This document shows positions 29,211 through 31,997 of a stretch of 64,000 nucleotides of DNA, in pieces. The notes under the pieces were generated by a model, which was given only the letters and a program-made list of their open reading frames with translations, had not been told where the DNA came from and searched no databases. The stretch's first letter is position 1. Every line of letters begins with the position of its first letter. Position numbers and translations under genes: made by a program. This stretch comes from Klebsormidium nitens. Lineage: Eukaryota; Plantae; Klebsormidiophyceae. The stretch covers positions 41,898 to 105,897 of the forward strand of contig DF237254.1 of assembly GCA_000708835.1 (NCBI GenBank), in the 5' to 3' direction.

Positions 29211-31615
29211 ATGGCGTCTCCTCCAATGAAGTCGCTTGGGCTCGTCCTTTTGGCCTTGTTTCTGCTCTCACAGGCAGCTCCAGCTTATGGGGCTCGCAGT
29301 CTGGCCCGTGGTGCAGTGGACAACCTCGTGTCAAACTTGCCTTCATGGATGATGCCAAGGTCCCTGTGCATCCCCACAGTGTCTTCCTGGGTGGAGAAGC
29401 ATGAGGGAAGGCATCGTTGTGTGTATGAGAACGAGCAGGGCGATAAGGCAGTGAGTTTCTGATCCAAGCCATCTATGTTTGATGCAGCCTTTCCTTCATG
29501 TTATTGTTGTTGCAAAAGGGTCCAGCTGAGACTTCCGTGCATGGGAGAGCTGTGCTCAACCTCTCCTCTGTCTGAGGTCATCAGAAAGGGTGACGATCTG
29601 TAAGCAAGGGGTTGATGAGCTAGTTTGGATTACTTGCTCTAGCATCAGAGTTGTAAGCAGATGTTGATAGCATATTTACCAGAAGTGGGTGCATGCAGAC
29701 CATCAGGGGTCCTTATGAATAGATCATGGGGGGTATAACCAGCCAGGCTCGTACAGGAGTTGACTGGCTATCAATTGTTGGGTGGTGGTCACAAAGGCAA
29801 TTACTGCTCTTTCTTACAGATGTGACAGAACTGTAAGTCTGAAACCTCTGGGCTTTCTTGTCGCAGCTTATCTACTATGTTCTGGAGCAATTTTGAGTGA
29901 GCCCTAAGGTCAGAATTGAGTGATCTGCTCCAGCAATTCAGACTGTCTCATATTAGATACTCAAACCCCTGCAAGGCTGGCCAACCTTCAAATTGCATGG
30001 TCTATGAGGTGGAATTCAACATGATGTATATCCTTAGCGCAGTGGGTTTTCTCTGCTGCAGATTGGTGTGAACTACAACCTTGAAGACGACCGCTCAGCA
30101 AGAAAGAGCGAGTTGAAGACGGTTCTGGCGGACTATGAGAAGGTTCTCAAGGGCGAGCAGTGCCTTAACGATGTACAGATTAGCGCCCTCCTACTTGCTG
30201 ACACAAAGCGCAAGTAAGATTGTGGTTCCAACTTGATACGTGTATGCTTCTCTTTGTGGCTGTGCCTGGAGTCTGCTTGTTGGTCTTAGGCACTGGTAAC
30301 GATTGACAAAGGTTGTTGTTGTTGACCATGGCGCCTGTCAGGATTTGGCCCCTTTTAAGGGTCCCCAAAGCCATGTAGCAACCAGTGGTGTAGTTGCAAG
30401 GTGGATTGTCAGTCTTCGGTTAGCCAAGGTTGGTGCAAGACCCAAGACTGGGTTCCTCCTTGTTTGTTGTAGGATTAAGGATTACGTTATGCAGGATTAA
30501 GGACTACGTTATGCAGGATTGGGTGAGCCGTTGTTTGTGTGGGACTGACAATCACTGCTTCTCTCATGATTGGGTTACCTGTAGTCTCCGGAGGATGGAT
30601 AAATCTGGCCATGCAAAGTCTGGGTCCATTTGTGAGTAATCCTGCTTGTGATGGTGATTGAGTTACTTATTGAAGACTGTCTTTACAGGCTGGACGAGGT
30701 TGCTGAGACAGTCCATAAGCTGGACGATCTCTGCTGCGACATTCAAGCAGTTCTGGCTGACCTAGACTGGTCTATGGGCCAGAAGGGGCTTGATGACTCT
30801 GACGTAAGGCTTCCTCGCATGTTTCTTGAGTTTGAAGTACATCTGCTTGGGTTAATTTTGGTTTAGCTCCAAGTCTTGAACACGCAGAGCCTTCTTGTTG
30901 GTTGTAGCAGATTATGGCTCCTAGACTGGGTTATACTCAGATTGGTGGTTTGGTATTTGGCATTGTGTTGGCATTGAGCAGTCAGAGCATACTGCAACCT
31001 GCCTTTTATCCTAGAGGTTCTAACCATAAGTGGCATTTCGACCTGTATTTTCCAAACTGTAAAATCCTAAAGTGTTCATCACAAGTTGCGTCCTGTAAGA
31101 TTTTGGCAGGCAAAATCTTTTTGCTCTGAGCAGACACGCTGATTTAGTGGTGCAATCTATGCTTATGTGTGGCGTTAATGCAGGTAACAATTCCAATTCA
31201 GATTCAAGGATCGAACTCATTTAGACAGGTCGACTCAATGGGTACAGGCAGTCCTGTGGGGAGTGGTTGCTGACAACGTGGGTTGTCTCAAGTTATAGCA
31301 CTCTCTTTCGGCAGAGTTGACAAGCTCATCAGTTCTATGGGTACTTAGAGAGATTGCTTCTATCAACTTGTTTTCCAATTGCCCGACTTTCTCTTACTGA
31401 ATTAGTCAGCTGAGTTGCTTATTGTCTTTTTGCAGTCTTTCTTGAAGGAAACTGAGAACGGTAACTGGGAAGATGCCGCAACAGCACTTCGTGCTACTAT
31501 CTGGTGCGTTAGCCACAAGAAGCGCTGCGATGCTGATGTGGCCAAGATTGAGAAGGGCTGCAGCAAGGGGTTGAACCTGCCCGACTTTGTGCATACGACC
31601 TACTCTCAACAGTAG
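29211..31615 (+). CDS. Secreted T4/GH24-like lysozyme-family protein (228 aa), catalytic motif degenerate
   Basis: Exons 29211-29450, 30062-30213, 30689-30803 and 31436-31615 splice in frame. Signal peptide (LGLVLLALFLLSQAAPAYG). HEG-x5-Y-x4-G-x3-IG motif, 'ADYEKVLKGEQCLNDVQI', 'QAVLADL..SMG..GL', 'GNWEDAATALRATIWC....RC' resemble eukaryotic T4-type lysozymes. Confidence 0.75.
30471..30520 (+). repeat. 22-bp tandem duplication in lysozyme intron 2
   Basis: aggattaaggattacgttatgc aggattaaggactacgttatgc aggatt. Confidence 0.85.
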
Positions 31616-31997
31616 GCTGGTCCGGCCTGACCGATATAAGGGGATGGCATAAGCGGGGGCTTATGTATTTCAAGGTGGGCCATCCCAGTTGTACAGTTTT
31701 GTCCTGAATAGAGTTGCGGCATTAGGAGATTTTGTAAAATTGCATATGGGATAATATGTTGAGTTTCACTCGCGATCCGTGTTTAGCAGCAATCGCAGCC
31801 CGCAGCGCGCGCCATCGAGTTGTATCATACAGGTAGTTTTTGTACCAACGGCGATGTTTGTTACTTTCGAGTGTATCAAAGTAGCCGATTGTAGCGTGTA
31901 AAGCTTCGCTAGCGCGCAGGAGAAGAGCATACCACTTTGTAGTAGGGCGTGGACTTCCAAGAACAATAGGTGGAACAACAAACATTTTTCATAATAG

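Follow-up and report, generated by a model that had tools for sequence, protein, structure and literature searches.

Phage T4 lysozyme and the T4L-like endolysins (CAZy GH24, PF00959) are two-lobed proteins in which a Glu ends helix A and the following hairpin of the N-lobe carries the two partner residues of this acid. In T4 lysozyme the Asp/Thr pair (Asp20, Thr26) positions the attacking water for the catalytic Glu11. The triad Glu-X8-Asp/Cys-X5-Thr is present in all T4L-like endolysins for which a structure has been solved (PMC8228626).

GH24 domains in the service of a cellular host are described from bacteria and from eukaryotes. SpmX from Caulobacterales contains a co-opted phage GH24 domain, in which E11 is kept, D20 is replaced by Leu or Arg and T26 is unconstrained (bioRxiv 10.1101/418723). 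The domain shows an attenuated peptidoglycan hydrolysis which is abolished by the exchange E11A, and the P22 lysozyme variant D20L behaves like SpmX (bioRxiv 10.1101/418723). Eukaryotic GH24 proteins derived from phages or bacteria are described for bivalves (PMC5303276) and for the fungus Trichophaea saccata (PDB 8B2S; PMC10394673).

We have analysed a stretch of 64 kb from the streptophyte alga Klebsormidium nitens (contig DF237254.1), in the following called the window. It contains a gene for a lysozyme-like protein, which is compared here with the systems mentioned above.

Gene structure and transcript support

The window gene was read directly from the DNA. It is located at 29211-31615 on the + strand, consists of four exons separated by three GT-AG introns, and encodes a product of 228 aa. 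An in-frame stop codon (29160-62) lies upstream of the ATG. The features are as follows:

29211..29450, + strand: exon 1, 80 codons including the start codon, phase 0. It encodes the signal-peptide-like segment (29211-29291), a linker predicted to be disordered, the first conserved Cys (Cys53), helix A with Glu65 (29403-05) as its last residue, and the hairpin residues Asn74 (29430-32) at the position of T4 Asp20 and Ala80 (29448-50) at the position of T4 Thr26.
29451..30061, + strand: intron 1, 611 nt, GTGAGT...CAG.
30062..30213, + strand: exon 2, 50 codons and 2 nt, from the second hairpin strand to the N-lobe helices, with the third conserved Cys.
30214..30688, + strand: intron 2, 475 nt, GTAAGA...CAG, phase 2.
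30689..30803, + strand: exon 3, 1 nt and 38 codons, with the long inter-lobe helix and a Cys-Cys pair.
30804..31435, + strand: intron 3, 632 nt, GTAAGG...CAG, phase 0.
31436..31615, + strand: coding part of exon 4, 59 codons and the stop codon (31613-15), with the C-lobe helices, the conserved Trp residues, the Arg that matches T4 Arg145 and the last three Cys.
31616..31696, + strand: start of the 3' UTR; positions 431-687 of the transcript contig L003 align to 31437-31696.

Intron 2 holds a tandem direct repeat of 22 nt (30468-30511), the copies of which are 91% identical. Elsewhere in the window, between 48001 and 50000, the GC content goes down to 0.36, compared with about 0.5 on both sides.

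Transcript support is given by intronless contigs of relatives, which originate from sequencing runs and from a metatranscriptome-like sample. They are of two kinds, represented by L003 on the one hand (88-90% nucleotide identity to the window gene) and by L001 and L002 on the other (77-79%). Each of the three contigs aligns as four transcript-contiguous blocks, the ends of which coincide exactly with the exon borders of the window gene, and positions 162/163 of L003 bridge 29450 and 30062. As judged from these alignments, every exon junction is confirmed by orthologous transcripts. At the protein level exons 1 to 4 are 98, 94, 97 and 85% identical to the L003 product. The dN/dS value in this comparison, counted exon by exon and pooled, is 0.053 with a dS of 0.76, which indicates that the window gene is under strong purifying selection.

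No second copy of the gene could be identified within the 64-kb window. Profile and word searches in the protein collection returned a paralogue from K. nitens and no product of the window gene, which may therefore be unannotated or very differently modelled in the K. nitens gene set. This finding could be read in favour of a decaying copy or a chance chain of open reading frames that does not work. Such an explanation is hardly credible: the frame is intact through all four exons, all splice sites are canonical, spliced orthologous transcripts exist, and the low dN/dS at this level of synonymous divergence argues against decay.

Similarity to T4 lysozyme and the catalytic hairpin

Pfam searches with the four exon translations taken singly revealed nothing relevant, and phmmer searches against the PDB with exons 1 and 4 gave chance matches only. 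Exon 1 likewise found no match in a word search, as the length window of this search would lead one to expect. When its mature part was used for an exhaustive search, five matches resulted. Two of them, a protein from Chara braunii and a two-domain protein from Closterium, are true relatives. The other three (P0001-P0003), which contain Ig-like or different repeats, were discarded as spurious. A profile search starting from the true relatives led to 16 proteins, among them named members from Closterium species and Sphagnum and the K. nitens paralogue KFL_003520130; two matches with identifiers of the type SM000... presumably belong to Spirogloea, and several more are unnamed transcripts. The 16 also include P0020, which carries PF00959 and the canonical Glu...Asp...Thr. 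Homologues of P0020 with 75% identity sit on phage contigs, and one of these matches a PHROG endolysin family. Three further family members were found on metagenome contigs.

The preliminary description of this DNA had proposed a T4 lysozyme ancestry from the spacing of the hairpin residues. A profile built only from streptophyte sequences, without any phage sequence, matches T4 lysozyme in the PDB with an E-value of 6.5e-7 over residues 6-157; if P0020 is added as one phage member, the E-value is 2.6e-13. The comparison with PF00959, which had been suggested as a check, has two sides. None of the window exons matches this Pfam family, just three of 12 family members do so at E<1, and the best of them (19.2 bits, E 0.0017) stays below the gathering score of 22.3, so that single algal members differ in this respect from recognised PF00959 proteins. 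The family profile as a whole, however, matches the PF00959 protein P0020 (E 1.2e-9) as well as T4 lysozyme itself. A tblastn search with an orthologue against cultured phages found the tail lysozyme of T4-like Salmonella phages (E 6e-4, 24% identity, 81% of the query).

As stand-ins for the window protein, two orthologues were used for fold models (AF2), namely P0006, which is 82-87% identical to the window exons (exon 4: 69%), and the L003 product (85-98%). The mean pLDDT is 83.6 for both, and 147 of 202 residues of the L003 model reach a pLDDT of at least 90. Both models are most similar to T4 lysozyme, with TM values of 0.64-0.76 in Foldseek and Z scores of 16-17.6 in VIA; the match to 201l_B, for instance, has a Z of 16.9 and an rmsd of 2.8 A over 150 of 166 residues. 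The next VIA matches are pesticin (Z 14.7), P22 lysozyme (13.8), SpmX (12.5), the fungal GH24 protein (11.8) and chitosanases (8-9). In the ESM Atlas all of the 30 nearest clusters are phage PF00959 families. Based on the profile matches and these models, the window protein is a homologue of T4 lysozyme (GH24) with a two-lobe fold of the T4 lysozyme type and the beta-hairpin of the N-lobe. The absence of a lysozyme fold had been named beforehand as an observation that would speak against the proposed ancestry; the fold is found in the orthologue models.

In the HMMER alignment of the family profile with T4 lysozyme, Glu65 corresponds to E11, Tyr72 to Y18, Asn74 to D20, Gly77 to G23 and Ala80 to T26, and behind Ala80 the next Gly corresponds to G28 and an Asn to G30. 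The hairpin thus reads Glu, eight residues, Asn, five residues, Ala, which is the T4 spacing, and this register is identical to the one given in the preliminary description, including the replacements at positions 20, 26 and 30 and the retained Glu. In the orthologue models helix A stops at the residue equivalent to Glu65, which places this Glu at its C-terminal end. The triad is incomplete in the window protein, with Asn74 and Ala80 in the partner positions. Exon 1 ends with the codon for Ala80, which places intron 1 after the residue that matches T26 and before the one that matches I27, inside the motif, as had been noticed before. A different junction of exons 1 and 2 which restores Asp or Thr had been considered as an outcome against this reading of the hairpin. 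It was rejected: the orthologous transcripts fix the junction, Asn74 is encoded within exon 1, and the Ala is the same throughout the family. Another candidate was the sequence His-Glu-Gly-Arg-His (29400-29414), which resembles the HExxH motif of zincins. It is not kept in Closterium and Spirogloea and straddles the end of the helix, and the resemblance is probably a coincidence of sequence.

The active-site positions were compared in 24 family domains from Klebsormidium, Chara, Closterium, Spirogloea, Sphagnum and moss-associated samples. Position 11 is acidic throughout, with Glu in 22 and Asp in two domains. The latter (P0010 and L005:151-807) both belong to the bryophyte-like clade and are not sisters in the tree. 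Position 20 is unconstrained (N, A, T, S, H, K, L), which means that there is no replacement base at this site, and all 24 domains have Ala at position 26. G12, Y18, G23 and G28 are invariant; in the profile alignment W126, W138 and R145 are kept as well. The Arg at R145 is present except in Closterium, where it is Val or Ala. The Closterium proteins P0004, P0007 and P0008 consist of two tandem domains, both of which contain the Glu and lack the Arg. The salt bridge to Arg145 therefore does not by itself explain why the Glu is retained.

In fold, in the Glu at the end of helix A, in hairpin spacing and in these conserved cleft and core positions the family resembles T4 lysozyme. It differs from it by the loss of Asp20 and by the invariant Ala in place of Thr26, and also by eight conserved Cys, a signal-peptide-like N-terminus and introns in a eukaryotic nuclear gene. 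The combination of Glu at position 11, a non-acidic residue at position 20 and a residue other than Thr at position 26 is shared with the muramidase domain of SpmX (PDB 6H9D), and both are under purifying selection in a cellular host; some algal members even have Leu at position 20, one of the two residues found there in SpmX. In contrast to the window protein, which is a single-domain eukaryotic protein predicted to be secreted, SpmX is a membrane-anchored multi-domain polarity factor of bacteria and derives from a P22-type lysozyme. Y18 is lost in SpmX and invariant in the algal family, and the algal model is structurally further from SpmX than from T4 lysozyme. The likeness between the two is convergent and not due to common descent.

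The family resembles the GH24 proteins from bivalves and Trichophaea saccata in that it combines a lysozyme fold of the phage type with a predicted secretion from a eukaryotic cell. Those proteins are described as lysozymes or muramidases. The algal family is devoid of two of the triad residues and makes up a streptophyte clade of its own. A cleft of the lysozyme superfamily with just one evident catalytic carboxylate is also the feature of goose-type lysozymes and single-glutamate lytic transglycosylases (GH23, GH102-104). None of their structures is found among the 50 best fold matches of the orthologue models.

Secretion features, distribution and introns of the family

The preliminary description had listed a signal peptide, eight Cys and three introns. 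Both counts are exact, and the N-terminus is indeed signal-peptide-like, with a hydrophobic core of 11 residues (KD 3.18) followed by AYG|A. The core and the small residues before the predicted cut are kept in nine relatives, and family members for which the N-terminus is available start in a signal-peptide-like manner. The eight Cys, which are distributed 2+1+2+3 over the four exons, are conserved in the family; the nearest phage relative P0020 does not have them. A predicted secretory route, as opposed to one into the plastid, finds its support in these two conserved sequence features, in agreement with the preference expressed earlier.

In the maximum-likelihood tree the sequences group by taxon. 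The Klebsormidium clade of the window protein has a support of 99/99, Spirogloea and Closterium cluster together (81/79), and so do Sphagnum and unnamed moss-associated sequences (95/93). The K. nitens paralogue and Chara stand separately. The deep nodes are without resolution, and the root is not reliable because the single outgroup has a very long branch. There is no vascular-plant protein among the 16 profile matches, for which 8000 candidates within a length window were scored. Neither the family pattern nor P0020 found a relative when bacterial and archaeal genomes were scanned; as the pattern required Ala, this blank says little about the origin.

No intron position is shared between the window gene, the K. 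nitens paralogue and the Sphagnum gene in a comparison of L018, L019 and L020 with the window introns, the near-misses being 1 and 4 nt apart, and the Chara gene is intronless. Introns that date back to a common ancestor were rejected, as the positions differ at every site among the three genes. The pattern fits an acquired gene that was originally intronless and gained its introns separately. One intron of the K. nitens paralogue is apparently of the GC-AG type. The deposited model of this paralogue (KFL_003520130; DF237301.1, L018:2833-3060) has 156 aa; its start is an internal Met a short distance ahead of the catalytic Glu. The frame is open further upstream, where it codes for the first conserved Cys and a segment resembling a signal peptide, and the model looks truncated at its N-terminus.

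The window gene is best explained as a member of a streptophyte-specific offshoot of the phage-type lysozymes, which occurs in streptophyte algae and mosses. Going by sequence, the locus is the second K. nitens member of this GH24-like family, beside KFL_003520130. We found no paper on the family in a literature coverage that is incomplete, and one member has the automatic JGI label GH24 lysozyme; the family is apparently undescribed.

Possible functions

As the best reading we tentatively propose, with a confidence somewhat short of even, a secreted peptidoglycan-directed protein that still makes use of its Glu, with weakened or altered catalysis. The protein would enter the secretory pathway and be cross-linked by its eight Cys, giving a GH24 fold with four disulfides. 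Outside the cell the conserved cleft would take up glycan strands of the peptidoglycan type, and the retained Glu65 would protonate the glycosidic bond. With the Asp/Thr pair missing, cleavage might be slow, as in SpmX and the P22 lysozyme variant D20L, or might follow a different chemistry, for instance a substrate-assisted or transglycosylase-like one. The protein's likely role would be the handling of bacterial cell-wall material around the alga, either for defence or for the release of wall fragments. The preliminary description had offered a pseudo-lysozyme and an altered mechanism as possibilities; by analogy to SpmX an attenuated hydrolase may be added as a third.

The main rival is a pseudo-lysozyme which binds peptidoglycan, or a chitin-like glycan, in its cleft without cutting it, and which would act as a secreted lectin, agglutinin or sensor of microbial patterns. 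We consider it possible, at a lower probability than the Glu-using protein, which we favour. The loss of two of the three triad residues in the whole family and the unconstrained position 20 are what a binder would lead one to expect, and they count against the Glu-using reading, as does the incomplete triad of the window protein. The Asp at position 11 in two members points in the same direction, because from T4 mutagenesis the exchange of the catalytic Glu for Asp is expected to inactivate the enzyme, and the tandem domains of the Closterium proteins are more like those of multivalent binders. However, an acid is always kept at position 11, over the whole span of streptophytes and even where the salt-bridge partner is gone. 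The active-site acids of T4 lysozyme cost stability rather than provide it, and binders that derive from glycosidases have usually lost the catalytic acid. It is for these reasons that the Glu-using reading is preferred; moreover SpmX, with the same pattern of residues, can still hydrolyse.

Two other explanations concern the substrate. An enzyme or binder for a different beta-1,4 glycan, which could be fungal chitin or chitosan or a wall polymer of the alga itself, is unlikely. Chitosanases do share the superfamily fold, and the remodelled hairpin could reflect a new substrate, but the model is far nearer to T4 lysozyme than to them (Z 17 versus 8-9), and many of the T4 cleft and core positions listed above are kept. 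Still less probable is an enzyme for plastid peptidoglycan remodelling that cuts the thin chloroplast wall of streptophyte algae and bryophytes during division. All named members belong to streptophyte algae or mosses, lineages for which the retention of plastid peptidoglycan is reported, and vascular plants are missing among the profile matches. That plastid peptidoglycan has to be hydrolysed is treated as a real need in the literature (PMC4015805, PMC9434261), which is in favour of this explanation, whereas the published candidate for the plastid hydrolase is DipM (PMC4015805). Against it stand the N-termini, which, where available, are of the hydrophobic signal-peptide type and not transit peptides, and the eight conserved Cys, which point to an oxidising secretory route.

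A wider scenario, which we put forward as speculation and regard as doubtful, would be the acquisition of a T4-type phage lysozyme before the Klebsormidiophyceae separated from the other streptophytes, and its conversion into a secreted protein which is locked by disulfides and works with one acid in its cleft. This protein might represent a new mechanistic class of GH24, transglycosylase-like or substrate-assisted, or a peptidoglycan sensor in an early form of plant immunity; algae and bryophytes would have retained it, and vascular plants would have lost it.

The family is easily overlooked, because its members stay below the Pfam threshold and the K. nitens protein set apparently does not include the window copy. 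Should cleavage or sensing of peptidoglycan be its function, the protein would add to the cases in which a eukaryote has domesticated a lysis enzyme of phages. Under the same condition it would be a eukaryotic parallel to the bacterial SpmX, in which the same two catalytic residues were dropped and the acid was kept. The protein is small, defined and expressible, and can be used to ask whether a GH24 cleft works without Asp20 and Thr26. It also offers a way to ask how the algal relatives of land plants handled bacteria or their own plastid wall.
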